Origin: Epithemia pelagica
Taxonomy: Eukaryota > Protista > Bacillariophyta
Length of the DNA stretch: 64,000 bases
Assembly: GCA_946965045.2 (NCBI GenBank)
Contig: OX337230.1
Coordinates: 1-64,000 of the forward strand
Reading direction: 5' to 3'
Both the position numbers and the translations under genes were made by a program. Every line of letters begins with the position of its first letter. The stretch's first letter is position 1. This document shows positions 1 to 16,982 of the stretch, one piece after another. A model generated the notes under the pieces. That model saw nothing but the letters and a program-made list of their open reading frames with translations, searched no databases and had not been told where the DNA came from.

Positions 1-552
1 CCCTAACCCTAACCCTAACCCTAACCCTAACCCTAACCCTAACCCTAACCCTAACCCTAACCCTAACCCTAACCCTAACCCTAACCCTAACCCTAACCCT
101 AACCCTAACCCTAACCCTAACCCTAACCCTAACCCTAACCCTAACCCTAACCCTAACCCTAACCCTAACCCTAACCCTAACCCTAACCCTAACCCTAACC
201 CTAACCCTAACCCTAACCCTAACCCTAACCCTAACCCTAACCCTAACCCTAACCCTAACCCTAACCCTAACCCTAACCCTAACCCTAACCCTAACCCTAA
301 CCCTAACCCTAACCCTAACCCTAACCCTAACCCTAACCCTAACCCTAACCCTAACCCTAACCCTAACCCTAACCCTAACCCTAACCCTAACCCTAACCCT
401 AACCCTAACCCTAACCCTAACCCTAACCCTAACCCTAACCCTAACCCTAACCCTAACCCTAACCCTAACCCTAACCCTAACCCTAACCCTAACCCTAACC
501 CTAACCCTAACCCTAACCCTAACCCTAACCCTAACCCTAACCCTAACCCTAA
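1..552 (+). repeat. Telomere, (CCCTAA)92
   Basis: Perfect CCCTAA hexamers from base 1 to 552; unique sequence starts tgttgttctg at 553. Confidence 0.99.
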
Positions 553-1359
553 TGTTGTTCTGAACACGTGTATGTGGCACTAGGCCCAAAGAGTTTGTGC
601 AATGTCCTCAATATCTCCCCATCCGTCAAGTCTCGTTTCATGGTCACTGATTCTTTCCCAACAGACTTTTCACCCAGTGCTTTATGATATGTCTCGAACA
701 AGTCTTCTTTTGCAGCTACATTGCTTGACCCATAATGGTCACGATGTGTTATGAGGCTGTGACCTGACTGTTCAGCCACAGTCTTGGTTGTGTACTGATT
801 CTGGATCGACATTTCATCAAACTCCGGGAAAAGAATATTAGAGATTGATGTCCACAAGTGCCTTACTTGTGTGCAATCCGGTCGGTTTTCGAAGCCAAAG
901 ATTGTTGCCACAGCATCGGTCATCTCGTGTACCCTGTTATTTCTCACTGGTACAAGTCTCCACAAGTCATGCTTCAGCTGTGACTGAAGGTGTTGACATA
1001 CAACTCTGAAGACCAAAAATATGCGTCCAAGTGACTTGGGTAGCTTGTGTTCAACAAGCTTTCCAGGTTTGTTGTTGAGTGCAGTGTATACTTTCTCGGT
1101 GTGACTGTAATAGTAGCATTGTTGGCCATGCCAACGAATGCTACTAAACAGACACCTTTCAATTTCTGCATATCGCATGGAGCCCAACCCTGTTCCGTGG
1201 AATGCAAGTTCCAAGAATGATACCAGAATATCAACAGATGTTGCATTGAAGGCATGGTGCACTTGAATCACTTCAGATGTTATGATAGAAGATTCTTTCT
1301 CGACCTGAAGAGACACCAATCCAGAAGATGGAGCCAAATTGACGTACAAGTGCAAATTT
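553..1359 (-). mobile_element. Family A YR-helicase element, copy A1 (internal fragment, telomere-capped)
   Basis: Near-identical to 2299-3104 (A2). Encodes the recombinase-like core (SMRYAEI, QVRHLW, SGHSLITHRDHY) and stops at a TAG formed by the first telomeric repeat (ORF 549..1448). Confidence 0.85.
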
Positions 1360-4243
1360 CCACAATGACAGAGTGACATCTCCCATTCTCGTTGCCAACC
1401 AGGGCCACAGTAGTCGATACCAAGATAGGAAACCGAGCTGCTGCCCACTCCTTTGCAATTCGATGTTGCTCAGCCGTAGGTGATTCGGAGGTCACAAACT
1501 CCACGGTACCAAAATTCAATTTCTGAATGGCCTCTGTTACTTCTTGTCCAATCCGCTTTGTTGAGACAATAATATGCATTGCATACCTCATGGGAGTATA
1601 TTTATTCATGGTCGAAGTCACAAAAAGAAGCAAGCTCTGTAAAATTTTGGGACGAATGACAATAGAGAACCTGAAACTCTTTGGGAAAGTTCCCAAAACA
1701 TTGTCTGCATATCCGATTGTCATATCTTTGAGATCTTGTCTTTGAGTCATTGACATGTATCTCATAAGACTTGGCAATAAAAACCGTGGGAGGGACCCAC
1801 TCAAGGTCATGACGGGCACTCCGTAGCGAACAAGACGTGGAAGGCAATCAAATTTGGACCGAAAGGAAAGCTCCGAGTAAATTGTGTGAACCTCATCAAT
1901 TATGATTTTGGCCAAAGCTGACTTCTCCACCCACTCTTCTATAGTAGAGGAATGATATTTCTCCAATATCCATATGGCCTCGAGACTGAAGAAAACAATG
2001 TCTGGCAACATTTTGAAGTCATGGAGACCATCAGGCAGTCGGTCTGCCGTAACTTGATTGCCTGAAACTGTCATGGAAGACACTTCCACACCTGATGGCA
2101 AGTTGCGTGATACTTGTTCTTCATGGTAACCAGATAAAAATTTGTAGGGCACGACTACCATATAGGTCTTGGGAGCCAAGTGATGTAGCTTGGCTCCTAC
2201 CACCGGGACTAACCATGATAGTGACTTGCCACCTCCACATGGTAAACCAAAGTGTCCATGACATGTGCTTTCTCTCGATGCAAAAGCCAACATGGCGTGT
2301 TGTTCTGAACACGTGTATGTGGCACTAGGCCCAAAGAGTTTGTGCAATGTCCTCAATATCTCCCCATCCGTCAAGTCTCGTTTCATGGTCACTGATTCTT
2401 TCCCAACAGACTTTTCACCCAGTGCTTTGTGATATGTCTCGAACAAGTCTTCTTTTGCAGCTACATTGCTTGACCCATAATGGTCACGATGTGTTATGAG
2501 GCTGTGACCTGACTGTTCAGCCACAGTCTTGGTTGTGTACTGATTCTGGATCGACATTTCATCAAACTCCGGGAAAAGAATATTAGAGATTGATGTCCAC
2601 AAGTGCCTTACTTGTGTGCAATCCGGTCGGTTTTCGAAGCCAAAGATTGTTGCCACAGCATCGGTCATCTCGTGTACCCTGTTATTTCTCACTGGTACAA
2701 GTCTCCACAAGTCATGCTTCAGCTGTGACTGAAGGTGTTGACATACAACTCTGAAGACCAAAAATATGCGTCCAAGTGACTTGGGTAGCTTGTGTTCAAC
2801 AAGCTTTCCAGGTTTGTTGTTGAGTGCAGTGTATACTTTCTCGGTGTGACTGTAATAGTAGCATTGTTGGCCATGCCAACGAATGCTACTAAACAGACAC
2901 CTTTCAATTTCTGCATATCGCATGGAGCCCAACCCTGTTCCGTGGAATGCAAGTTCCAAGAATGATACCAGAATATCAACAGATGTTGCATTGAAGGCAT
3001 GGTGCACTTGAATCACTTCAGATGTTATGATAGAAGATTCTTTCTCGACCTGAAGAGACACCAATCCAGAAGATGGAGCCAAATTGACGTACAAGTGCAA
3101 ATTTAGGTTGAGGAAATCAGTCCATTGGTCACCAACCAGAAGAGTTCTGAAAGATGAAATACACTTTTCTTCAATACATGGTACAACATTCGTCCAAATA
3201 TCAAATTTAAAAAGGAAGTTGTCAACCAATATATCTTTTGTGGTTCGAATGGACACTTTCCGGGAAGATGGCATAAGTGCTTCTTTTTCGCGCATGCGTC
3301 GAATGGAACTTGCCAAGAAATTGATTGTTATGGATTCCTGTGCCCGTTTTACTAGAGTCAAGGCCTGTTGAGAATAATCTTTGTCCATTTTGTAGATCAA
3401 GGAACATATACTCGCCCTTAGAATGGTGAGCAGAGCGGAATACATTGTTGCGATACGTGATGGGCCCAGTACGGACAATGACCCTGCGGTGTCCTTATGC
3501 TGCAAAGTCCGGCCAACCGCATAAGTCATGAGCATAGTATGGTGCCTGACAGAGTCAGGTGTCTCGAGACACAGATCAACAAGTAATGACTGTAAGTCAC
3601 ATTCTCTCTTCATAATGGATGGCTGCTGCTTGTGGATGAAGCACAACAATTTCTTGAGCTCTGGAACAAGTCGGTTTGGAAACTTGGTGAATGTGTTGGT
3701 CGTATTTGCTCCAGCATGTGACCCACTTTCCCTTGTACCATCAAATACCAAAAGCTTCGACCGAAAATTTGCTGGGACCATTTTCACATGAATTGGAGCG
3801 CCATGCAACAACCACTTCTCTCCAAAATCATAGAAAAACTTGAGTATGGGTTCGTTGACTTCATCTTTGCCGCTAGTGGTTGTCAGAGAAAGCAAATTTT
3901 CCATCCGTTCTTGAAAGGTTGCTCCATCTGGCTTGGAAGAGTAGTGTTCCTCCTGAGCCAATGGATGAAACAAAGGAACAAAACAATCAACCATCTCCTC
4001 AGATACCATATGGAAAGTTTGGGTGACCGCTCTCTTTGTTTTCAAGATTGGATCCTCTTGGGAATATTTCATACTGACAGCAGTCATAGATACCAGCAAC
4101 CCTAACCCTAACCCTGCAAATCCATCGATTGTCATCACTATGACTTCGGGCAAGTCATCCCGTGCAAACCAGTTGGGCCAATTCTCATGACATAGATCGT
4201 TCTTTGCCAACATCTCGACGCATAAACCATCATGCAAACCCAA
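1280..4243 (-). CDS. Tyrosine-recombinase-like domain + SF2 (RecQ-like) helicase, family A; chimeric at both ends, lacks helicase motif VI
   Basis: YR-like FHGTGLGSMRYAEI, TEKVY, QVRHLW, GH-x8-Y (GHSLITHRDHY). Helicase motifs I GLPCGGGKS, Ia VVVPYKFL, II IIDEVH, III TLSGSLP, V ILVSTTVALVG. The first ~49 aa come from B1 plus a telomere linker and the last ~27 aa from A1. Confidence 0.8.
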   Translation of the reverse strand: MGLHDGLCVEMLAKNDLCHENWPNWFARDDLPEVIVMTIDGFAGLGLGLLVSMTAVSMKYSQEDPILKTKRAVTQTFHMVSEEMVDCFVPLFHPLAQEEHYSSKPDGATFQERMENLLSLTTTSGKDEVNEPILKFFYDFGEKWLLHGAPIHVKMVPANFRSKLLVFDGTRESGSHAGANTTNTFTKFPNRLVPELKKLLCFIHKQQPSIMKRECDLQSLLVDLCLETPDSVRHHTMLMTYAVGRTLQHKDTAGSLSVLGPSRIATMYSALLTILRASICSLIYKMDKDYSQQALTLVKRAQESITINFLASSIRRMREKEALMPSSRKVSIRTTKDILVDNFLFKFDIWTNVVPCIEEKCISSFRTLLVGDQWTDFLNLNLHLYVNLAPSSGLVSLQVEKESSIITSEVIQVHHAFNATSVDILVSFLELAFHGTGLGSMRYAEIERCLFSSIRWHGQQCYYYSHTEKVYTALNNKPGKLVEHKLPKSLGRIFLVFRVVCQHLQSQLKHDLWRLVPVRNNRVHEMTDAVATIFGFENRPDCTQVRHLWTSISNILFPEFDEMSIQNQYTTKTVAEQSGHSLITHRDHYGSSNVAAKEDLFETYHKALGEKSVGKESVTMKRDLTDGEILRTLHKLFGPSATYTCSEQHAMLAFASRESTCHGHFGLPCGGGKSLSWLVPVVGAKLHHLAPKTYMVVVPYKFLSGYHEEQVSRNLPSGVEVSSMTVSGNQVTADRLPDGLHDFKMLPDIVFFSLEAIWILEKYHSSTIEEWVEKSALAKIIIDEVHTIYSELSFRSKFDCLPRLVRYGVPVMTLSGSLPRFLLPSLMRYMSMTQRQDLKDMTIGYADNVLGTFPKSFRFSIVIRPKILQSLLLFVTSTMNKYTPMRYAMHIIVSTKRIGQEVTEAIQKLNFGTVEFVTSESPTAEQHRIAKEWAAARFPILVSTTVALVGNENGRCHSVIVEICTCTSIWLHLLDWCLFRSRKNLLS
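1360..4097 (-). mobile_element. Family A YR-helicase element, copy A2 (truncated at both ends)
   Basis: Shares sequence with A1 and A3. Proximal end abuts (AACCCT)3. Distal end breaks after helicase motif V and joins A1. Confidence 0.85.
4098..4115 (+). repeat. Interstitial telomeric remnant (AACCCT)3
   Basis: aaccctaaccctaaccct lies between A2 and B1 and is absent from the uninterrupted A (near 13170) and B (near 7383) copies. Confidence 0.92.
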
Positions 4244-6780
4244 AGTTTGTGATGCCTTTCCAAGAGGGCTTTGACTTTGACCATTTGATAGCTAGCCAAG
4301 AAGTTGTAGGGCACAAGAAACATGTTGGTCGAAGTCTTCAGTCCTCGAATGGATTCCACCACACAACGCACCAAGATGTTCATGGTTTTGCCCGATCCAC
4401 AAGGTTGAAGCATAAGTTTATGTCTTCCCGGTGAATTGGTGCACATATCAATTGCTGTTTCTTGATTGCCTCGGAATGTTGCCTCTTCATTACCCAACAA
4501 CAATCGTAATGCTTCTAACCGATGCTGACGTCTTGTTATTGTCAGCTGATGGCATACCGAGTCCACGATCATACATTTGGTACCGATGTAACGATGAAAT
4601 CGGGCATAGTAGATCTCATGACTGTTGCTCACGCGTGTCTGGTAGTTGGACATTGCAGTCTGTTGGGAGTGCTTACTCAACTCACTCAATGCCGTTGAAG
4701 AGACCAATGCCTGACTGTTGCTGTCTGGAAAGAGCAAGTTCACAAGAGAAGTCCAGAACTGTCGAACAACCACCGAACCAGGACGACTATCCAAGCTGAA
4801 AATCTCTTGGGCAACATCCTCAAAGAAAAACCTCCGGTCATTACCATATTGTGGAAAAAATCTCCTTGCATTGGGCCCATTCCAAACTTTCAGCACCACA
4901 ACTCTGTAGAGAAATAGACACCTTGCTATGATCCGAGGCATCTTGTGTTCAACGGGGGGTCGATCATGAGCTTGCAGTTTGGGTTGTTTACGACTCGGTG
5001 CAGAAACATATAAATCTTGGTAGTTTGTATTTTTCCACCGAAGCTGAGTCACATCGAGACAATGGACCTCTGAGAACCGATCTGCACCATAGCCAAAACC
5101 ATGGATGGCAAATTCCATCAAGGCAGTTAGTCGTTCGAACTGACTTTTCACCAGTTCCTTGCATTCCAAATCTTGTGTGTTGGTACCATCTGGCAGCGAT
5201 CCCAAACCCTTGGACCACTCCACAATAGTCAAGTCACCATCTAAGCAGAGGAATTTCTCGTATGCCTTTCCGACAAAGCATGCATCAAAAATACCATGGG
5301 CCTTTTCCACAACCGTAGGAACAACCTTAGACCAATGCGCTTTTTGGAACGCATGTCCATCAACAATAATATTGAAGAACTCATCGACCACAACCTCCCT
5401 TTTAGGAGGCTTCTCTTGATATTGTTTCCTCAAAGAATAAATCTTAGGACAGAGAAAGTGTATTGTAGGACAATGTCTGTACCGTTCCATGACCTGCTCG
5501 ACCAACTTGCCCTGCCCATCGTAGTATTTTAAGCCAGCCGCAACCCCACAGCGAAGCAGATGTAAAAGGTCAGCTAGAAAGAGATGAAAGAAGACATGAG
5601 ATTTGAACAACCAAGTATATTCATTGACAGGGGGAAAGGGGGACTCACCAAGTTCTTGAGCGGCAACTCCACATGATTTCAACCTCAAGCCATTCTTCGT
5701 CTTAGTGAACAACCTCTGCCGAGAGAACAGTAACACTACCCCTGAGTCGGACCAACAATAAATCTCACTGTCGAGTACCAACTCTGTCAGGAGTGACCCA
5801 AGAACACAATTTTGGAATGCAGTGTCCACAGAGAATCCATCACCTTCAACCTGGCGGCAAAAATAGTCCCATCTCTTCCACTGCCTCTGATGCAGGAAAC
5901 ACAAGAGAGAGAGGAGTAGAGGTTTCACTCGTTTGTCATAATCATGTCGATGGCTGAAATTCCATGAGTGATCCACATCACCATCATGGAAAGCAAACTT
6001 AGCAATCCGACTCCGAATGTCTGCTGGAATCCCCATTACGATCGAAGCCATCCTGTCCAGAAGGTAACAACCAACCTGATAGAGTCGGTTGATTGCAGTG
6101 TTATTTCCTCTCTTATGATACTCGGCTTCAAACATAATTCCTTGTGCAATGTCTCCAAGGGCATTCTCCAACGTGCCAGGAATCATATTACTCAGTACAT
6201 CGGGCCACCTTCCCAAAGTGTCGCTTGGATGCAATAATGGTTCAATCGAACTTGCAAACTCGTTGGGTAACCTGCTGCAGGGCAGCGGCATGCTAAATGT
6301 TGAATTCTCAACTTGAATTATTGTGGTCCAGTTGGTTTCTTGCTGCATGGTTTCTCTTGGGGGCCTTGGCATGAAGCATCCACACTTCAGCTTGAGGAAA
6401 GTCTTGGCAATGACTTTGGCACTAGCGCAACAACCAGCGACGTGCTTCTTGCACAAAAGCTTCACATGAAACATCTTGTCACAGTCACTACAGAAATACT
6501 TGATTCTTGTATCATTTGACTCATGAATGAAACAATCAAACGGTTGGTTGTTGGCATTCTCCACAAGAGTGTGTATTTTGTTACCAAGATGTCTCCCAGG
6601 AAAGCGAAAGGACACCCCATGAATTTTGGAGCAGGTCTTGGCGTGGCGGGCAAGACATTTCATGTTTGCTCGGAAACCACCACCACAGAGCTTACAGACC
6701 AAGCCACAGGGTGTGGCAAAGTCCACAAGCCCCAAGTAATCGTCAAACTCCATGGTGGCTGTTGTCGTTCCTATGGTCAA
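4138..6780 (-). CDS. Zn-finger + tyrosine-recombinase-like + helicase N-part, family B; predicted 75-nt intron 5574-5648
   Basis: C2H2-like CKLC..RHAKTC and CSDC..KHVAGC; IHGFGYGADRFSEV, VEHKMP, VRQFW, KH-x8-Y (KHSQQTAMSNY); Walker A QPCGSGKT; GTGAGT...TTTCTAG intron. Confidence 0.8.
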   Translation of the reverse strand: MTIGTTTATMEFDDYLGLVDFATPCGLVCKLCGGGFRANMKCLARHAKTCSKIHGVSFRFPGRHLGNKIHTLVENANNQPFDCFIHESNDTRIKYFCSDCDKMFHVKLLCKKHVAGCCASAKVIAKTFLKLKCGCFMPRPPRETMQQETNWTTIIQVENSTFSMPLPCSRLPNEFASSIEPLLHPSDTLGRWPDVLSNMIPGTLENALGDIAQGIMFEAEYHKRGNNTAINRLYQVGCYLLDRMASIVMGIPADIRSRIAKFAFHDGDVDHSWNFSHRHDYDKRVKPLLLSLLCFLHQRQWKRWDYFCRQVEGDGFSVDTAFQNCVLGSLLTELVLDSEIYCWSDSGVVLLFSRQRLFTKTKNGLRLKSCGVAAQELGESPFPPVNEYTWLFKSHVFFHLFLADLLHLLRCGVAAGLKYYDGQGKLVEQVMERYRHCPTIHFLCPKIYSLRKQYQEKPPKREVVVDEFFNIIVDGHAFQKAHWSKVVPTVVEKAHGIFDACFVGKAYEKFLCLDGDLTIVEWSKGLGSLPDGTNTQDLECKELVKSQFERLTALMEFAIHGFGYGADRFSEVHCLDVTQLRWKNTNYQDLYVSAPSRKQPKLQAHDRPPVEHKMPRIIARCLFLYRVVVLKVWNGPNARRFFPQYGNDRRFFFEDVAQEIFSLDSRPGSVVVRQFWTSLVNLLFPDSNSQALVSSTALSELSKHSQQTAMSNYQTRVSNSHEIYYARFHRYIGTKCMIVDSVCHQLTITRRQHRLEALRLLLGNEEATFRGNQETAIDMCTNSPGRHKLMLQPCGSGKTMNILVRCVVESIRGLKTSTNMFLVPYNFLASYQMVKVKALLERHHKLWVCMMVYASRCWQRTIYVMRIGPTGLHGMTCPKS

Positions 6781-6944
6781 AATAGGTTTGGGACGTATGA
6801 CCCTTTGCAGCCAAAAAAGAGGCCCTAAAGAGGGTCATTCACCTGAAAAACTGAAAAGGCCCTAACACCAGAGATCATTCACCTCAAAATCTTTGAGCGA
6901 CAAGAAGGAATATGGTTTACTATGGAGAGTTAATGTAGGTTTGC

Positions 6945-7094
6945 AAATCGACCTTCTTGTGGTCGAAATCGACCTTTTTGTGGTCGCACTAAAATTTCGC
7001 ACGCAACAATACAGTGATTCAAAATTGACCTTTTTGTGGTCGCGCATGTGAATCTACAGAATGAACTTAGTGCGCACGACAAAAAGGTCGATTT
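6945..7094 (+). repeat. Subterminal repeats of family B: three direct ~21-bp copies plus one inverted copy
   Basis: aaatcgacctt(c/t)ttgtggtcg at 6945, 6966 and 7022 (the third begins aaatt); inverted cgacaaaaaggtcgattt at 7077-7094. The same layout occurs at the other three B termini. Confidence 0.9.
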
Positions 7095-7107
7095 CTAGCA
7101 AAACCCT

Positions 7108-10100
7108 TAGGGTTCTCTCCCGAGAGATAATCCGACAGTCCGTGATATGCAGAACCACTCAAATCGAGGAAGTCCATCAATTTCTGACCAAAACTCATCG
7201 AAATACTTCCAGACATCAGTGTTACGGCGACTCCAAGTGCAGATATTTCCCGTAGACAAGAATAGCATGGACGGAAGTCGACCTCTGTAACGATGGTTTG
7301 TGCCTCATCGACAAAAATCCCATTCAACTTTCCATTGGAGCACCATCCAGAAAGTTTTGTTAGATGGTCTTTGAAGAAGGTCGCAAATCCATCGATTGTC
7401 ATCACTATGACTTCGGGCAAGTCATCCCGTGCAAACCAGTTGGGCCAATTCTCATGACATAGATCGTTCTTTGCCAACATCTCGACGCATAAACCATCAT
7501 GCAAACCCAAAGTTTGTGATGCCTTTCCAAGAGGGCTTTGACTTTGACCATTTGATAGCTAGCCAAGAAGTTGTAGGGCACAAGAAACATGTTGGTCGAA
7601 GTCTTCAGTCCTCGAATGGATTCCACCACACAACGCACCAAGATGTTCATGGTTTTGCCCGATCCACAAGGTTGAAGCATAAGTTTATGTCTTCCCGGTG
7701 AATTGGTGCACATATCAATTGCTGTTTCTTGATTGCCTCGGAATGTTGCCTCTTCATTACCCAACAACAATCGTAATGCTTCTAACCGATGCTGACGGCT
7801 TGTTATTGTCAGCTGATGGCATACCGAGTCCACGATCATACATTTGGTACCGATGTAATGATGAAATCGGGCATAGTAGATCTCATGACTGTTGCTCACG
7901 CGTGTCTGGTAGTTGGACATTGCAGTCTGTTGGGAGTGCTTACTCAACTCACTCAATGCCGTTGAAGAGACCAATGCCTGACTGTTGCTGTCTGGAAAGA
8001 GCAAGTTCACAAGAGAAGTCCAGAACTGTCGAACAACCACCGAACCAGGACGACTATCCAAGCTGAAAATCTCTTGGGCAACATCCTCAAAGAAAAATCT
8101 CCGGTCATTACCATATTGTGGAAAAAATCTCCTTGCATTGGGCCCATTCCAAACTTTCAGCACCACAACTCTGTAGAGAAATAGACACCTTGCTATGATC
8201 CGAGGCATCTTGTGTTCAACGGGGGGTCGATCATAAGCTTGCAGTTTGGGTTGTTTACGACTCGGTGCAGAAACATATAAATCTTGGTAGTTTGTATTTT
8301 TCCACCGAAGCTGAGTCACATCGAGACAATGGACCTCTGAGAACCGATCTGCACCACAGCCAAAACCATGGATGGCAAATTCCATCAAGGCAGTTAGTCG
8401 TTCGAACTGACTTTTCACCAGTTCCTTGCATTCCAAATCTTGTGTGTTGGTACCATCTGGCAGCGATCCCAAACCCTTGGACCACTCCACAATAGTCAAG
8501 TCACCATCTAAGCAGAGGAATTTCTCGTATGCCTTTCCGACAAAGCATGCATCAAAAATACCATGGGCCTTTTCCACAACCGTAGGAACGACCTTAGACC
8601 AATGCGCTTTTTGGAACGCATGTCCATCAACAATGATATTGAAGAACTCATCGACCACAACCTCCCTTTTAGGAGGCTTCTCTTGATATTGTTTCCTCAA
8701 AGAATAAATCTTAGGACAGAGAAAGTGTATTGTAGGACAATGTCTGTACCGTTCCATGACCTGCTCGACCAACTTGCCCTGCCCATCGTAGTATTTTAAG
8801 CCAGCCGCAACCCCACAGCGAAGCAGATGTAAAAGGTCAGCTAGAAAGAGATGAAAGAAGACATGAGATTTGAACAACCAAGTTTATTCATTGACAGGGG
8901 GAAAGGGGGACTCACCGAGTTCTTGAGCGGCAACTCCACATGATTTCAACCTCAAGCCATTCTTCGTCTTAGTGAACAACCTCTGCCGAGAGAACAGTAA
9001 CACTACCCCTGAGTCGGACCAACAATAAATCTCACTGTCGAGTACCAACTCTGTCAGGAGTGACCCAAGAACACAATTTTGGAATGCAGTGTCCACAGAG
9101 AATCCATCACCTTCAACCTGGCAGCAAAAATAGTCCCATCTCTTCCACTGCCTCTGATGCAGGAAACACAAGAGAGAGAGGAGTAGAGGTTTCACTCGTT
9201 TGTCATAATCATGTCGATGGCTGAAATTCCATGAGTGATCCACATCACCATCATGGAAAGCAAACTTAGCAATCCGACTCCGAATGTCTGCTGGAATCCC
9301 CATTACGATCGAAGCCATCCTGTCCAGAAGGTAACAACCAACCTGATAGAGTCGGTTGATTGCAGTGTTATTTCCTCTCTTATGATACTCGGCTTCAAAC
9401 ATAATTCCTTGTTCAATGTCTCCAAGGGCATTCTCCAACGTGCAAGGAATCATATTACTCAGTACATCGGGCCACCTTCCCAAAGTGTCGCTTGGATGCA
9501 ATAATGGTTCAATCGAACTTGCAAACTCGTTGGGTAACCTGCTGCAGGGCAGCGGCATGGTGAATATTGAATTCTCAACTTGAATTATTGGGGTCCAGTT
9601 GGTTTCTTGCTGCATGGTTTCTCTTTGGGGCCTTGGCATGAAGCATCCACACTTCAGCTTGAGGAAAGTCTTGGCAATGACTTTGGCACTAGCGCAACAA
9701 CCAGCAACGTGCTTCTCGCACAAAAGCTTCACATGAAACATCTTGTCACAGTCACTACAGAAATACTTGATTCTTGTATCATTTGACTCATGAATGAAAC
9801 AATCAAACGGTTGGTTGTTGGCATTCTCCACAAGAGTGTGTATTTTGTTACCAAGATGTCTCCCAGGAAAGCGAAAGGACACCCCATGAATTTTGGAGCA
9901 GGTCTTGGCGTGGCGGGCAAGACACTTCATGTTTGCTCGGAAACCACCACCACAGAGCTTACAGACCAAGCCACAGGGTGTGGCAAAGTCCACAAGCCCC
10001 AAGTAATTGTCAAACTCCATGGTGGCTGTTGTCGTTCCTATGGTCAAAATAGGTTTGGGACGTATGACCCTTTGCAGCCAAAAAAGAGGCCCTAAAGAGG

Positions 10101-10379
10101 GTCATTCACCTGAAAAACTGAAAAGGCCCTAACACCAGAGATCATTCACCTCAAAATCTTTGAGCGACAAGAAGGAATATGGTTTACTATGGAGAGTTAA
10201 TGTAGGTTTGCAAATCGACCTTCTTGTGGTCGAAATCGACCTTTTTGTGGTCGCACTAAAATTTCGCACGCAACAATACAGTGATTCAAAATTGACCTTT
10301 TTGTGGTCGCGCATGTGATTCTACAGAATGAACTTAGTGCGCACGACAAAAAGGTCGATTTCTAGCAAAACCCTTAGGG
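7108..10379 (-). mobile_element. Family B element, copy B2 (longest; reaches helicase motifs II-III)
   Basis: ORFs 8884..10047 and 7405..8877 are joined across intron 8841-8915. A second frame (ORF 7067..7510) carries IFVDEAQ and TLMSGSI. Terminus CCCTTAGGG at 10371-10379. Confidence 0.87.
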
Positions 10380-10831
10380 TATTATGATTAGGGTTAATGT
10401 TATGAATAGAAGCACGGTCTTTCCCTGACTGGAATTGTGCGACCAAACCTTCTCTACAACCCCGCTGTTGAAAATGAATATACTAAAAAGTTAATTGTAC
10501 TGTGTGAATGGAATCTTAAGAAAAATTATCCTAAATTGCGTAGTCCTGTCCCCCTCCTCTTAATTTTTGTACATTCCGGGGGGACAGGAATCCGCAAATC
10601 ACGGTAGTCGAGCTAGGACTAACTAATAAGCATGGGCATAGGTATGACTAGAATAGGGCTGTTCTAGTGGGCTGTTCTGCAGTGGGACAGCAGGCTGCTC
10701 TGCAGTGGGACAGGGCACTTCTGCAGTGGGACAGAGGGCGGTTCTGCAGTGGGACAAGTGGGATGGGGGCTGTTCTGCAGTGGGACGCTAGAGTCTACGT
10801 AGGCCTACGGACAGGCACTTTCTCCTTAGGG
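10380..10831. mobile_element. Non-coding segment Y: degenerate TTAGGG-like units, a CTGCAGTGGGAC array and a CCTTAGGG end
   Basis: Following the B2 terminus: ttaggg/ta/ttatga/ttaggg/ttaatg. Five CTGCAGTGGGAC cores in ~10657-10787. The end is re-copied at 11248-11321. Confidence 0.6.
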
Positions 10832-11109
10832 TCATTCACCTCAAAAACTGAAAAGGCCCTAACACCAGAGATCATTCACCTCAAAATCTTTGAGCGACAA
10901 GAAGGAATATGGTTTACTATGGAGAGTTAATGTAGGTTTGCAAATCGAGCTTCTTGTGGTCGAAATCGACCTTTTTGTGGTCGCACTAAAATTTCGCACG
11001 CAACAATACAGTGATTCAAAATTGACCTTTTTGTGGTCGCGCATGTGATTCTACAGAATGAACTTAGTGCGCACGACAAAAAGGTCGATTTCTAGCAAAA
11101 CCCTTAGGG
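10828..11109 (-). mobile_element. Family B terminus-only fragment (~280 bp)
   Basis: Matches the B1 upstream region from agggtcattcacc (~6831) to CCCTTAGGG. Confidence 0.9.
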
Positions 11110-11250
11110 GCAGTGCTCTTTTGCAACAAAAGGCATATATATCATTGCTCATATGCACAGATACTATAGCCCCTTGTGCTCATATGCACACGTTCAAATC
11201 CTACGGTGTCTAGTACTAAAGACACCCAAAAAAGGCAAATATCCTTAGGG
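11106..11250 (-). mobile_element. Family A terminus-only fragment
   Basis: Matches 13971-14082, with ~30 bp extra; ends caaatatCCTTAGGG (11243-11250). Confidence 0.85.
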
Positions 11251-11321
11251 ACAAGTGGGATGGGGGCTGCTCTGCAGTGGGAGGCTAGAGTCTACCTAGG
11301 CCTACGGACAGGCACTTTCTC
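11248..11321. mobile_element. Segment Y terminal fragment
   Basis: gggacaagtgggatgggggc...ggacaggcactttctc matches ~10751-10824. Confidence 0.85.
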
Positions 11322-14082
11322 GGCACGACTACCATATAGGTCTTGGGAGCCAAGTGATGTAGCTTGGCTCCTCCCACCGGGACTAACCATGATAGTGACT
11401 TGCCACTTTCACATGGTAAACCAAAGTGTCCATGATATGTGCTTTCTCTCGATGCAAAAGCCAACATGGCGTGTTGTTCAGAACACGTGTATGTGGCACT
11501 AGGCCCAAAGAGTTTGTGCAATGTCCTCAATATCTCCCCATCCGTCAAGTCTCGTTTCATGGTCACTGATTCTTTCCCAACAGACTTTTCACCCAGTGCT
11601 TTGTGATATGTCTCGAACAAGTCTTCTTTTGCAGCTACATTGCTTGACCCATATTGGTCACGATGTGTTATGAGGCTGTGACCTGACTGTTCAGCCACAG
11701 TCTTGGTTGTGTACTGATTCTGGATCGACATTTCATCAAACTCCGGGAAAAGAATATTAGAGATTGATGTCCACAAGTGCCTTACTTGGGTGCAATCCGG
11801 CTGGTTTTCGAAGCCAAAGATTGTTGCCACAGCATCGGTCATCTCGTGTACCCTGTTATTTCTCACTGGTACAAGTCTCCGCAAGTCATGCTTCAGCTGT
11901 GACTGAAGGTGTTGACATACAACTCTGAAGACCAAAAATATGCGTCCAAGTGACTAGGGTAGCTTGTGTTCAACAAGCTTTCCAGGTTTGTTGTTGAGTG
12001 CAGTGTATACTTTCTCGGTGTGACTGTAATAGTAGCATTGTTGGCCATGCCAACGAATGCTACTAAACAGACACCTTTCAATTTCTGCATATCGCATGGA
12101 GCCCAACCCTGTTCCGTGGAATGCAAGTTCCAAGAATGATACCAGAATATCAACAGATGTTGCATTGAAGGCATGGTGCACTTGAATCACTTCAGATGTT
12201 ATGATAGAAGATTCTTTCTCGACCTGAAGAGACACCAATCCAGAAGATGGAGCCAAATTGACGTACAAGTGCAAATTTAGGTTGAGGAAATCAGTCCATT
12301 GGTCACCAACCAGAAGAGTTCTGAAAGATGAAATACACTTTTCTTCAATACATGGTACAACATTCGTCCAAATATCAAATTTAAAAAGGAAGTTGTCAAC
12401 CAATATATCTTTTGTGGTTCGAATGGACACTTTCCGGGAAGATGGCATAAGTGCTTCTTTTTCGCGCATGCATCGAATGGAACTTGCCAAGAAATTGATT
12501 GTTATTGATTCCTGTGCCCGTTTTACTAGAGTCAAGGCCTGTTGAGAATAATCTTTGTCCATTTTGTAGATCAAGGAACATATACTCGCCTCCGGCCAAC
12601 CGCATAAGTCATGAGCATAGTATGGTGCCTGACAGAGTCAGGTGTCTCGAGACACAGATCAACAAGTAATGACTGTAAGTCACATTCTCTCTTCATAATG
12701 GATGGCTGCTGCTTGTGGATGAAGCACAACAATTTCTTGAGCTCTGGAACAAGTCGGTTTGGAAACTTGGTGAATGTGTAGGTCGTATTTGCTCCAGCAT
12801 GTGACCCACTTTCCCTTGTACCATCAAATACCAAAAGCTTCGACCGAAAATTTGCTGGGACCATTTTCACATGAATTGGAGCGCCATGCAACAACCACTT
12901 CTCTCCAAAATCATAGAAAAACTTGAGTATGGGTTCGTTGACTTCATCTTTGCCGGTAGTGGTTGTCAGAGAAAGCAAATTTTCCATCCGTTCTTGAAAG
13001 GTTGCTCCATCTGGCTTGGAAGAGTAGTGTTCCTCCTGAGCCAATGGATGAAACAAAGGAACAAAACAATCAACCATCTCCTCAGATACCATATGGAAAG
13101 TTTGGGTGACCGCTCTCTTTGTTTTCAAGATTGGATCCTCTTGGGAATATTTCATACTGACAGCAGTCATAGATACCAGCCTCCCACAAGAAGTGACCTG
13201 TAATTGTTCCCTCTCAGGCCCAATGGCTCCACAGGAGTTAGGCGAGGAGAGATGACGCATAACATTGCTGAGTCTTGTCCAACCAACAAGACACCTGCAG
13301 GAATATCCAAGAACAGACCTCCCCGTGAAGAAGTTTTTTGCGGTATGAGGGTCTTCTTGCAAAATTTGCTCAAGGGACTGTTTTCTTGCAACAAGGAGTC
13401 GGTTGTCAGTTGCTGAGACACAGACTCCATGTTGATTTAGATGCCGCTGCATGGACCAAAGACTTTCTCCGAATGATTTCTTGCATATGCCGCATCCCAT
13501 ACCAAAGGGTGTCACAATTGTAGCATCTAAACATGACAAGCCAATGCCCTGATCGGAACGGATCTTCTTCACAGGCGGTCTCCGGGATGGAGATGGCGTT
13601 CCAGGCCCATTGTTGGTAGCCATTGCTGGTTTCCTCGTGTGCATGGAACAGAGGAAGAGACATAACCAGCCGACTCTCAAGCAAAAGCAAGGATGGGCCT
13701 CTTTGCAAGAGTCATATTTCATGAAACAACAATGACCTTTTGTTGGGCCAATTGAGGTTTTCAGGTGAAGATGTTGGGCCTATTGAGGTTTTCAGGTGAA
13801 GATGTTGGGCGCGAAGGGGCACGCAGGCGAGCTTTTCGCGCCAAAGAATGGGGGAACAACTAAGAGTGTGGTAATGGTTGGTAATGAATGAAATTAAGGA
13901 CTCATATTGAATATGAGTGCTTAGAAATTAGACTTGAGCGGGGCATAGACATTCTGTGCTCATCTGCACAAGGGGCAGTGCTCTTTTGCAACAAAAGGCA
14001 TATATATCAGTGCTCATATGCACAGATACTATAGCCCCTTGTGCTCATATGCACAACACCCAAAAAACACAAATATCCTTAG
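11322..14082 (-). mobile_element. Family A element, copy A3 (has N-terminus and promoter-side terminus; inactivated)
   Basis: ORF 12571..13722 gives the Zn-finger N-terminus (CGICKK..RHLNQH). There is a 91-bp deletion at 12590/12591 (equal to 3417-3507 of A2) and an AAG>TAG nonsense at 11954. It is truncated in helicase motif Ia and ends CCTTAG at 14077-14082. Confidence 0.87.
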
Positions 14083-15275
14083 AGGTTTCACTCGTTTGTC
14101 ATAATCATGTCGATGGCTGAAATTCCATGAGTGATCCACATCACCATCATGGAAAGAAAACTTAGCAATCCGACTCCGAATGTCTGCTGGAATCCCCATT
14201 ACGATCGAAGCCATCCTGTCCAGAAGGTAACAACCAACCTGATAGAGTCGGTTGATTGCAGTGTTATTTCCTCTCTTATGATACTTGGCTTCAAACATAA
14301 TTCCTTGTTCAATGTCTCCAAGGGCATTCTCCAACGTGTCAGGAATCATATTACTCAGTACATCGGGCCACCTTCCCAAAGTGTTGCTTGGATGCAATAA
14401 TGGTTCAATCGAACTTGCAAACTCGTTGGGTAACCTGCTGCAGGGCAGCGGCATGGTGAATATTGAATTCTCAACTTGAATTATTGGGGTCCAGTTGGTT
14501 TCTTGCTGCATGGTTTCTCTTTGGGGCCTTGGCATGAAGCATCCACACTTCAGCTTGAGGAAAGTCTTGGCAATGACTTTGGCACTAGCGCAACAACCAG
14601 CAACGTGCTTCTCGCACAAAAGCTTCACATGAAACATCTTGTCACAGTCACTACAGAAATACTTGATTCTTGTATCATTTGACTCATGAATGAAACAATC
14701 AAACGGTTGGTTGTTGGCATTCTCCACAAGAGTGTGTATTTTGTTACCAAGATGTCTCCCAGGAAAGCGAAAGGACACCCCATGAATTTTGGAGCAGGTC
14801 TTGGCGTGGCGGGCAAGACATTTCATGTTTGCTCGGAAACCACCACCACAGAGCTTACAGACCAAGCCACAGGGTGTGGCAAAGTCCACAAGCCCCAAGT
14901 TATCGTCAAACTCCATGGTGGCTGTTGTCGTTCCTATGGTCAAAATAGGTTTGGGACGTATGACCCTTTGCAGCCAAAAAAGAGGCCCTAAAGAGGGTCA
15001 TTCACCTGAAAAACTGAAAAGGCCCTAACACCAGAGATCATTCACCTCAAAATCTTTGAGCGACAAGAAGGAATATGGTTTACTATGGAGAGTTAGTGTA
15101 GGTTTGCAAATCGACCTTCTTGTGGTCGAAATCGACCTTTTTGTGGTCGCACTAAAATTTCGCACGCAACAATACAGTGATTCAAAATTGACCTTTTTGT
15201 GGTCGCGCATGTGATTCTACAGAATGAACTTAGTGCGCACGACAAAAAGGTCGATTTCTAGCAAAACCCTTAGGG
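14080..15275 (-). mobile_element. Family B element, copy B3 (5-prime third only; innermost unit)
   Basis: ORF 14029..14943 equals the B N-terminus up to DYDKRVKPL; terminus CCCTTAGGG at 15267-15275 abuts SF1 sequence. Confidence 0.88.
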
Positions 15276-16982
15276 ACGAGGAGGTTGCGTAGTTCCACTG
15301 GTAGTCGATGCTGCAGAGGGAGGTAAGGGTGGTGGCCCTTCCGGTGCAGGCGGCAAGGGTGGAAGGCTTCCATTGGGTGGTGGAGGTGGAAGTTTGTCCC
15401 CACCGTCATTTGATGTCGGTTCGTTGGCTGGCTGGTTGGCCTTTTAGCCATCCAGTTCAGCCATGAAAGAGAGATATTCAGAATCAATCTTTTGTTCACT
15501 TCCTTGTTGGTTGGCATCACCGCCCGCAGGATTGGTAGGGTCCAGATTGCGTCGCGTACAATCGCGTGTGGGATGACTAGTGTCACCACAAATGGCACAC
15601 TTGATGCCTCCCCCCCCCCCCCCCATGGCACCCTTGTTAAGGAATCGTTTGGGACATTCAAAGGATCGATGTCCTTTCTCACCACAAATTTCGCAAAAGG
15701 CATCATTTTCCTTCAATGTACCATTCAAGAGGGCCAATTCTCGAAGCTGCTGTTGTTTGTGCACATTCTTTTCATCGTCAATGACGACGAGCATTTGTTC
15801 AATCATCTCCGATGCCGCATCCACAGCACGTTGATCATCTCCCGAAATGGCCACATGCAAGGGTTCATTGTCTCCGTCCATGACTTTACCATCCCGGCGA
15901 CCACAAGCTCCCTCCTTGACCGATCCCCGACCGCGAATGGCAATTTTGCAGCCCGTCTTGGCTTCCAATTCTTTTTGCGTCTTGCCTCGTGGTCCAATGA
16001 TTAATCCAATAAAATTGTAGTTCGGATGTTCTTCTACGGGTACTCGAATCTTTTTGACTCGCCGTCGTACCAATAAGGAAGCCGCCCCCGTTGGTAACAC
16101 GGGTCAAACGTTGCCCTTGTTGGATAACCGCATGATACTTTCCAACAAGTCTTGACGCTCCGCCGTGTATCGTTCCCTCCAACGGACCGCTTGTGTATTT
16201 TTTCGTTTCCCATCAGCACCGTAAACTAGAGACGTATAGAAACAAGAAAAAGATGGTAAGGTACAAGAAACATGGAATGGACTCTTGTTCGAACCCCAAA
16301 AGGCAACACAAAAGTCGATTGTGAGCAAACGATTATACTTACTTGGAGGCGGCGAAGGCGATCGATCTCGATGTTCTCGTGGGAGCGCTTACACTTCTAG
16401 ATTTTCCAGACGATCGTTCACGGCACGAAGCTTGGCTTGCTTGGTTCGGAGATCCTGTTGTTGCTGCTGCGTCAAGTTGGTGTTGACCAAGGACATGCTA
16501 GGCAATACGACACAAGGTGGTTGTCGTGAGGATTGGACTGGTGGCAGGGGAGCGAATCGTTTGTTCACAGGAGGATCCGACTGGCCATTCGAAGGTTCGG
16601 ATGCCGCTTTGCCCCATCGCGATTTTCGTTTGCGGGGAGCCTCTCCAGCAGTGCCATTGTTATTGGTGTCGCTCTCAATTTTGACGGCAACTCCTCCGGG
16701 ACGATTTTCTTGTTGTTGCATTGCCTTGAGATATTCCTTCCGAGTTTCCTTCCATCCTGGCCAATTCAGGACTTCTTTCCACATGGAGGGATACGGACCG
16801 TACTTGTCCTGTAGCATTCGTGTCACCGGGCTGTGGTTGTGGCTGCTGTTGTACCACTCTTTCATTTTCACATGCTCATTTCGCACCGTCACCACAAACT
16901 CTGCTGCTTCCTCACTGTCTTGACCCATTGTGCGTTGTGTCACATCCTGCAAGGTGAAATTATTCAGTTCCAATTGATGCAA
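15270..16982 (-). pseudogene. SF1: Splicing factor 1 / branchpoint-binding protein with three in-frame stops; intron 16226-16342
   Basis: RKRKSRW (ULM), RSPSPPP, YGADGKRKNT, KH-QUA2 PNYNFIGLIIGPRGKTQKELEAKTGCKIAIRGRGSVKEG, two CCHC knuckles, YLSFMAEL and a Pro-rich tail, all in one frame. Stops are TAA 16389-91, TGA 16104-06 and TAA 15444-46. Confidence 0.9.

Follow-up and report, generated by a model that had tools for sequence, protein, structure and literature searches.

To our knowledge, the mobile elements that specialise in telomeres all use reverse transcription, and the helicase genes repeated beside telomeres are thought to move by homologous recombination only. We know of no report of a recombinase domain or a fixed terminal site in the latter repeats (TLH in fungi, Y′ in yeast), and a literature search found none. 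Cryptons are tyrosine-recombinase DNA transposons of fungi, stramenopiles, and animals, and as far as we know they encode no helicase. Here, we describe a stack of gene copies at one chromosome end of the diatom Epithemia pelagica (contig OX337230.1), of which positions 1-64,000, called the window below, were analyzed. The copies encode a tyrosine-recombinase-like domain fused to a RecQ-like helicase. They probably belong to a family of telomere-terminal DNA elements of diatoms that has one defined end and is attached to chromosome ends at the 8-bp site CCCTAAGG by strand transfer through the recombinase.

The window holds six partial copies of two families, three each of A and B, all on the minus strand and pointing toward the telomere. 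This count had been made from the letters in an earlier sequence-only reading and was confirmed by self-BLAST; all module calls given here come from self-BLAST and self-comparison of the window. Copies of the same family are 98.7-99.9% identical, and an alignment of the A and B proteins over 420 aa shows 27% identity (E = 1e-38). Every module starts with CCCTAAGG on the gene strand. In the window, the 8-mer is found at 6 sites, compared with 0.8 expected; each of them lies on the minus strand and heads a module (7112, 10379, 10831, 11109, 11250, and 15275). Modules likewise start with it at L001, L003, L004, and L005, which are contig ends of the ENA assembly ERZ21939226, apparently from the same species as the window, and in L002, L009, and L010, which are distant relatives from JGI metagenomes. 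When the window and these seven loci are taken together, CCCTAAGG lies on the gene strand at 36 sites and on the opposite strand at 2, and 29 distinct left flanks meet 9 right-hand starts, including the A, A′, and B leaders (A′ and G are further families, described below), several noncoding modules, and two foreign elements. On its left, each site adjoins the preceding module, which is cut at an arbitrary point of its 3′ part, and nearly all modules begin at position 1 of their family. In two cases, one left flank is joined to different modules, showing that an existing CCCTAAGG site can be re-used. The same 8-mer also heads elements of taxa that are only about 30% identical in protein.

The sequence just inside the site has some features of its own. 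CTAG, often CTAGA, occurs at most 45 nt downstream of CCCTAAGG in 7 of the 9 module families (e.g., at 10334-10371, minus strand) and may be a subterminal protein-binding motif, with the limit that several of these families are related and thus not fully independent. In L007, a metagenomic relative, a unit of about 90 nt starting with CTAAGGAAAAGG is repeated in tandem upstream of the ORF (open reading frame; L007:1-200), and this same leader start follows CCCTAAGG in L002. The tandem unit may reflect repeated short additions or a simple duplication.

Where on the old chromosome end does a new module join? The uncut left module is known from longer copies for 12 junctions. At 11 of the 12, the native sequence continues at the breakpoint with CCC, which has a background frequency of 1.4% (P ~ 6e-20), and without exception the fourth acceptor base is A or T. 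Slightly off-register variants are seen at two junctions, one reading CCTCTAAGG (14077-14085) and the other with 5 bp deleted (11322). In no case does the acceptor sequence from beyond the cut reappear behind the insert, and thus the events are replacements, not insertions. There are only two 5′-truncated modules, neither of which starts at CCC. The junction data therefore point to a nonhomologous, site-specific, oriented, and one-ended process with a three-base identity, which fits the chemistry of tyrosine recombinases.

Other sources of the junctions were considered and rejected. Reciprocal swapping of ends was ruled out, since its products, 5′-truncated modules that start at a native CCC, were not found in the window and loci examined. 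The minus strand of the stack runs 5′ to 3′ to the chromosome end and is collinear with the telomeric G-strand. On this strand the junction motif reads CCCTAA and not TTAGGG, which speaks against telomerase addition as its source, and on the other strand, conservation also extends to the two bases that precede TTAGGG. Priming on the G-overhang, as in the Athena elements, was ruled out because it predicts the opposite gene orientation.

The other end of an intact unit is the telomere. The A′ unit at L003 15074-22710 consists of CCCTAAGG, a 650-nt leader, a 1307-aa ORF, a 178-bp satellite array, and (TTAGGG)n. L009 and L010 carry one 1410-aa element after CCCTAAGG, behind two different host flanks, and this element enters (TTAGGG)n 158 nt past its stop codon. 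Among the units examined, none was flanked by two CCCTAAGG sites with an intact 3′ end. Since intact units run into the telomere, the element has a single defined end, and its additions replace the old chromosome end. At L003:19694-22386 and L004:17904-21316, the 178-bp satellite array separates the full-length ORF from the telomere, and a 106-nt piece of the 3′ tail recurs within the array. The window end has no such satellite because its terminal copy is broken.

From the chromosome end inward, the window contains the following features.
1-552, plus strand: telomere array (CCCTAA)92, 92 perfect repeats forming the chromosome end, seeded directly on a broken A copy at 553.
553-1359, minus strand: A1, an 807-nt internal fragment of family A with the recombinase catalytic region, truncated at both ends and telomere-capped.
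1360-4097, minus strand: A2, a 5′-truncated family A copy with an intact reading frame, which spans the middle region and the recombinase domain and continues into the RecQ-like helicase, stopping just short of motif VI.
2399-3007, minus strand: the predicted tyrosine-recombinase catalytic domain of A2, with the candidate residues R30, K57, R134, H168, and Y177 (domain numbering).
4098-4115, no strand assigned: an 18-nt interstitial telomere relic, aaccctaaccctaaccct, from an earlier break of B1 healed by telomerase.
4116-7112, minus strand: B1, a family B unit with its CCCTAAGG start at 7105-7112 and a 282-nt leader, broken at 4116; its ORF encodes zinc fingers, the recombinase, and helicase motifs I-Ia.
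7113-10379, minus strand: B2, a family B unit of 3267 nt that starts with CCCTAAGG at 10372-10379; its cut lies past helicase motif III at a native CCC, the point where B1 joined.
10380-10831, minus strand: module C, noncoding, with its CCCTAAGG start at 10824-10831.
10828-11109, minus strand: a solo family B leader of 282 nt, headed by CCCTAAGG at 11102-11109 and cut off at a native CCCT.
11106-11250, minus strand: a 145-nt fragment of a family A leader, which starts with CCCTAAGG at 11243-11250 and is also cut off at a native CCCT.
11251-11321, minus strand: a piece of module C, joined to A3 at the latter's broken end; the site has a 5-bp deletion compared with the same junction in L003.
11322-14079, minus strand: A3, a copy of family A that has a leader of its own and the region of the start codon, cut inside the helicase; a 91-nt deletion at 12590/12591 (A2 equivalent 3417-3507), relative to A2 and the L001 reference, shifts its frame.
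13429-13494, minus strand: the C2H2-like finger of A3.
14080-15275, minus strand: B3, the oldest module and the most proximal one, whose CCCTAAGG start (15268-15275) is joined to unique host DNA; it is cut at CCTCTA, the point of A3 joining.

Read from the sequence, the order of addition from proximal to distal is B3, A3, the C fragment, the A-leader fragment, the B leader, module C, B2, and B1. Subsequently, a break in B1 was healed by telomerase, the 5′-truncated A2 was captured and joined bluntly to A1, and a break in A1 was healed in turn, which produced the present telomere. The junctions at 4098-4115, 1359/1360, and 553 are ordinary telomere healing or end joining and are not specific to the element. 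Module C contains short tandem repeats of about 14 nt resembling gtcccactgcagaa (10680-10790, minus strand). Position 15275, where the sequence-only reading had ended the element region, coincides exactly with the base at which the most proximal CCCTAAGG boundary begins, and no element sequence was found at 16-64 kb of the window. Beyond it lie unique host genes: a KH-domain and zinc-knuckle gene resembling the branch-point-binding protein SF1 (15444-16100, minus strand), whose 3′ end is 170 nt from the oldest CCCTAAGG, and then Josephin, GTPase, TPR, GST-like, and Kelch genes. The GST-like protein is 72% identical to a protein of Epithemia clementina, followed by Nitzschia and Cylindrotheca, which places the organism among the raphid pennate diatoms.

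The region ahead of the helicase had been read as a tyrosine recombinase from four motifs, GSMRYAEI/GADRFSEV, TEKVY/SRKQP, VRHLW/VRQFW, and GHSLITHRDHY/KHSQQTAMSNY, all of which are present and mutually aligned in A and B. An alignment of this region from 69 sequences has a mean column identity of 29%, and the relatives are 21-61% identical. In it, R172, K199, R276, H310, and G339 are invariant in 69/69 sequences, Y319 is found in 68/69, and E175 in 61/69. The candidate R-K-R-H-Y set, exactly as proposed in the sequence-only reading, comprises the sole invariant or near-invariant polar residues across these diverged relatives. The H-x8-Y spacing and the R, K, R, H/W, Y order are those of the tyrosine recombinase/topoisomerase IB superfamily. 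The catalytic residues of Cre are R173, E176, K201, R292, W315, and Y324, and the spacing of R-E-K-R-H-Y parallels them. In hhalign comparisons with single sequences, which are statistically weak, R/E/K fall in register on Cre R173/E176/K201, and R/H/Y on lambda Int R311/H333/Y342.

Structure prediction of the region before Walker A, which had been proposed as a check, returned a tyrosine-recombinase catalytic fold. The AlphaFold2 model of the pre-helicase region has a pLDDT of 91.4, and that of the catalytic subdomain alone has a pLDDT of 94.3 and a pTM of 0.87. The best 50 Foldseek matches of the subdomain in the PDB all belong to the tyrosine-recombinase/topoisomerase IB/protelomerase superfamily and include Cre, XerA, XerH, integron integrase, Flp, YopR, TelA, and topoisomerase IB. 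Cre is matched with E = 3e-4, a probability of about 1.0, and a TM score of about 0.5, and the viral library gave phage integrases and baculovirus VLF-1. When the whole 388-aa middle region is used, the E-values are weak (0.05-1) because the domain arrangement differs, with topoisomerase IB and Cre as the top matches. These results support the assignment of the pre-helicase region, as modeled, to a tyrosine-recombinase catalytic domain with R-K-R-H-Y as the candidate catalytic residues. From the residues and the predicted fold, we infer that this domain catalyzes the attachment.

The presence of SF2 motifs I-III after the recombinase region, also noticed in the sequence-only reading, is confirmed (Pfam DEAD, E = 1e-6), as is the loss of motif VI in the window copies: A2 ends at ...GNENGRCHSVIV, and the B copies end earlier. 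A single helicase sequence alone gives weak, generic SF2 matches. By contrast, a profile built from 30 sequences matches RecQ5 best (3e-22), followed by RecQ, RECQ1, and BLM, over positions 4-425, with DEAD-box proteins (2e-15) behind the RecQ proteins. The match runs through the Cys4 zinc subdomain, in which the four Cys are invariant. The RecQ-like character proposed earlier is thus borne out, and by its SF2 core motifs I-VI and Cys4 zinc subdomain, the helicase is assigned on sequence to the RecQ type. Pfam scans of full-length members gave no match to the winged-helix (RQC) and HRDC domains; in these members, the place after the Cys4 zinc subdomain is taken by C-terminal CCHC knuckles. Two Cys/His finger motifs are conserved at the N-terminus, where Pfam gives a weak match to C2H2, and no reverse-transcriptase domain was found by Pfam in any member scanned. 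The ORF of 1300-1600 aa is ordered as C2H2-like fingers, a helical region, the tyrosine recombinase, the RecQ-like helicase with Cys4, and the CCHC knuckles.

How widespread is this protein? A word-indexed protein search gave five close relatives, of which the full-length ones have 1264-1351 aa with C-terminal CCHC knuckles and motif VI, so that the complete helicase missing from the window exists elsewhere. A profile of the pre-helicase region run against 1.84 billion cluster representatives found 371 relatives at E ≤ 1e-3, 126 of them at E ≤ 1e-30. Most full-length ones have 1300-1600 aa with the domain at about 400-780, indicating that the architecture is conserved, and most of the 30 sampled from the 371 keep one common domain order. 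Among these 30, 28 are known solely from metagenome, ENA, or Logan assemblies, with no annotation beyond 'helicase', and 2 are hypothetical proteins of Fistulifera solaris. That the family is annotated solely as 'helicase' or 'hypothetical' follows from Pfam missing the recombinase region. The word-indexed search with a 30-sequence full-length alignment returned one match, already known, and a metagenome locus scan with a 4-sequence profile returned one short locus.

The layout of the element recurs in other diatoms, including F. solaris and two metagenomic lineages. A multi-copy, telomere-oriented terminal helicase ORF was found in the window, at the four ERZ21939226 contig ends, at L009/L010, and at two F. 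solaris ends, where two members are each the last gene before the telomere and both point toward it. The relatives are multi-copy, telomere-pointing, and at contig or chromosome ends, rather than single-copy, internal, and syntenic, the pattern that would have spoken against the sequence-only reading. Families A, A′, B, and G coexist in one genome at 27-51% identity, together with many dead fragments and noncoding hitch-hiker modules.

Some individual loci deserve description. Family G, the fourth family, is 32% identical to A′ and occurs at L003:6783-9638 (minus), L005:4510-5691, and about L004:12152-13283. One G copy is 5′-truncated, inverted, and centromere-pointing, with the CCCTAAGG of a B module directly abutting it; it perhaps arose from a fold-back event. 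In L008, a degenerate interstitial (TTAGGG)n tract at 15343-15392, 750 nt past the ORF, is followed head-to-head by AACCCTAAC, and from its sequence the tract looks like an old chromosome end turned internal. In L011 (F. solaris BDSP01000259), a RusA-like ORF of the Holliday-junction resolvase family (PF05866; L011:6354-6749) ends directly proximal to CCTAAGG, 3.2 kb upstream of the terminal recombinase-helicase gene, with assembly gaps nearby.

Taken together, an intact unit runs 5′ to 3′ toward the chromosome end from CCCTAAGG through a 0.5-1.4 kb leader, one ORF, and a short tail with or without the 178-bp satellite, into the telomere. A new unit joins another chromosome end at CCC(A/T), with all distal sequence replaced, and later breakage strips its distal 3′ part before the next unit is added, giving a stack. 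The proposed mechanism is as follows. At the joint, the recombinase is expected to cut the sense strand 5′ of CCC both in the donor CCCTAAGG and at the acceptor CCC. The 3′-phosphotyrosyl link would form on the acceptor side, and the donor would keep a 5′-OH. The donor 5′-OH strand could then swap in, its three C pairing with the acceptor GGG, and be ligated. Cre, lambda Int, and Flp use the same 3′-phosphotyrosyl chemistry and swap 2-3 nt as a homology test before ligation. Heterology beyond CCC would block the second exchange. The fused RecQ helicase would probably unwind the distal arm and so drive copying, and replication to the donor's end would complete the joint. In effect, a cassette that bears a telomere would be transferred nonreciprocally, by copying. 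Vaccinia topoisomerase IB can join the end that it holds covalently to any DNA with a 5′-OH, and by analogy it may serve as a close functional precedent for such a one-ended transfer.

Several observations weigh against this proposal. The recombinase domain is undetected by sequence, that is, by the Pfam Phage_integrase models and by PDB sequence and profile searches at E ≤ 10. The His of HxxR is missing, as had been noticed in A and B, and this position is L, T, V, or I in the relatives of the 69-sequence alignment, although this feature is not universal in the superfamily; topoisomerase IB works with the R-K-R-H-Y set and has Lys at this position. The exact 8-mer is absent from the available flanks of L006, L008, and L012, and is replaced by CCTAAGG in L011 and by CTAAGG in L007. 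The L008 gene is internal, more than 15 kb from its contig ends, and the one inverted family G fragment means that the orientation rule has exceptions. The synonymous to nonsynonymous ratios of the window copies, 7:14, 2:11, and 3:9, are those of neutral decay, so that activity at this end is not current. Finally, priming by a polymerase is another process that can give a 3-nt microhomology together with a fixed donor end.

Could these genes simply be a host telomere-linked helicase family, like Y′ or TLH, spread by generic subtelomeric recombination, break-induced replication, and end joining, in which the recombinase-like domain takes no part and CCCTAAGG is a telomere-like microhomology hotspot? 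Such processes do act here, as seen in the telomerase healing at 553 and 4098-4115, the blunt join at 1359/1360, the composite blocks re-duplicated in tandem in L005, and the neutral evolution of the window copies. However, homology-driven copying leaves no junctions, whereas 29 unrelated flanks meet 9 starts at one 8-mer in one orientation. Furthermore, this 8-mer heads noncoding modules and elements about 30% identical in protein, and the catalytic residues are invariant throughout the family, which implies selection for catalysis. We therefore consider this explanation unlikely. To much the same degree, we doubt a Crypton-like cycle, in which a circle with one CCCTAAGG is excised and integrates into CCC-containing targets by conservative two-strand exchange. 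It would explain the tyrosine-recombinase fold, the head-to-tail arrays with a site at each boundary, and the re-use of existing sites. However, the 5′ end alone is defined, the 3′ ends being arbitrary truncations or the telomere; no unit between two sites retains its 3′ end; and the distal acceptor sequence never follows the insert, as it should unless it were replaced.

An RNA-mediated origin appears still less probable. Here, CCCTAAGG would be a transcription start, and a read-through transcript ending in UUAGGG would be copied by telomerase or another reverse transcriptase, giving a cDNA whose 3′ GGG anneals to CCC at a damaged end. The polarity, the fixed 5′ boundary, and the 3-nt GGG/CCC microhomology are all accounted for in this way. 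However, the elements encode no reverse transcriptase, the units include kilobases of satellite and no poly(A), short noncoding modules bear the same 8-mer, and the conserved recombinase and helicase are left without a role. We give equally little weight to a domesticated end-maintenance factor, a topoisomerase IB-like or resolvase-like enzyme with a helicase that serves host telomeres, for example as a telomerase backup, with stacking as a by-product. The position as last gene before the telomere, which is conserved in several diatoms, and the topoisomerase IB and protelomerase among the fold matches would suit it, whereas the coexistence of A, A′, B, and G with dead fragments and hitch-hiker modules is what selfish elements typically show. 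Both readings could hold at once. We prefer strand transfer of a one-ended element at CCCTAAGG. The results support the self-mobilizing telomeric element of the sequence-only reading, all of whose parts testable in silico held up: the fold, the residues, the RecQ-like helicase, the terminal multi-copy relatives, and the fixed-site junctions, which that reading had not noticed, argue for it, while some of the window junctions are ordinary end repair.

If the proposal is correct, it would represent a new transposition strategy, in which a DNA element installs itself and a telomere on chromosome ends, and it would give a mechanistic rationale for telomere-linked helicase genes. It would also point to a new way in which chromosome ends are repaired and subtelomeres evolve in diatoms, which are a major group of algae, and such elements could double as a telomerase-independent means to re-cap damaged chromosome ends. 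With an 8-bp site and a 3-nt acceptor rule defined, the idea can be tested directly in vitro, and, if it is confirmed, the protein would be a naturally occurring, sequence-specific 'end-joining' enzyme that might serve as a tool.

A full-text literature search, of incomplete coverage, found no published description of a recombinase-RecQ telomeric element. How, then, does the diatom element compare with known systems? Like Cryptons, it is a DNA element with a tyrosine recombinase as its sole breakage and joining enzyme, no terminal inverted repeats, and a short identity at the joint. However, Cryptons have two defined ends, insert via a circle, and are dispersed in the genome, whereas the diatom element is one-ended, telomere-ended, helicase-fused, and end-replacing; one defined end and replacement mean that it is not a Crypton. 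With the fungal TLH (S. pombe tlh1/2) and yeast Y′ Help1 repeats, it shares a large helicase ORF, of RecQ type in the diatom, in multi-copy subtelomeric repeats next to the telomere. Those repeats, by their descriptions, spread by homologous recombination, and the diatom element goes beyond them in its fixed site and recombinase domain. The HeT-A/TART/TAHRE elements of Drosophila and the Athena/Coprina Penelope-like elements are also chromosome-end specialists that form head-to-tail stacks with one end fixed and the other eroded. They are reverse transcribed from RNA with the fixed 3′ end proximal, whereas the diatom element has its fixed 5′ end proximal and carries a recombinase and a helicase; since it has no reverse transcriptase, it is not a retroelement.

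Poxvirus and bacterial topoisomerase IB and the protelomerases (TelK, TelA, and ResT) share the catalytic fold and an R-K-R-H-Y set without the extra His. The vaccinia enzyme cuts at a short specific site and performs one-ended strand transfer, and protelomerases act at DNA ends. These enzymes are neither fused to helicases nor mobile elements, and protelomerases use palindromic sites and form hairpin ends, whereas the diatom element ends in ordinary TTAGGG telomeres. Helitrons likewise fuse a nicking and strand-transfer enzyme to a helicase and have one end more sharply defined than the other. They use an HUH nuclease (5′-phosphotyrosine) and a Pif1-type SF1 helicase and insert genome-wide; the diatom element is telomeric, with a tyrosine recombinase, for which a 3′-phosphotyrosine is expected, and an SF2 helicase of RecQ type. 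In our view, the element is of a new kind, although the enzymatic modules that make it up are known, the TLH proteins having been compared by description only. The chances are about even that it represents a new class of eukaryotic mobile DNA, the first telomere-specific element to act at the DNA level, in which a recombinase-RecQ protein cuts at CCCTAAGG and a cassette of gene, satellite, and telomere is copied onto an end at CCC.

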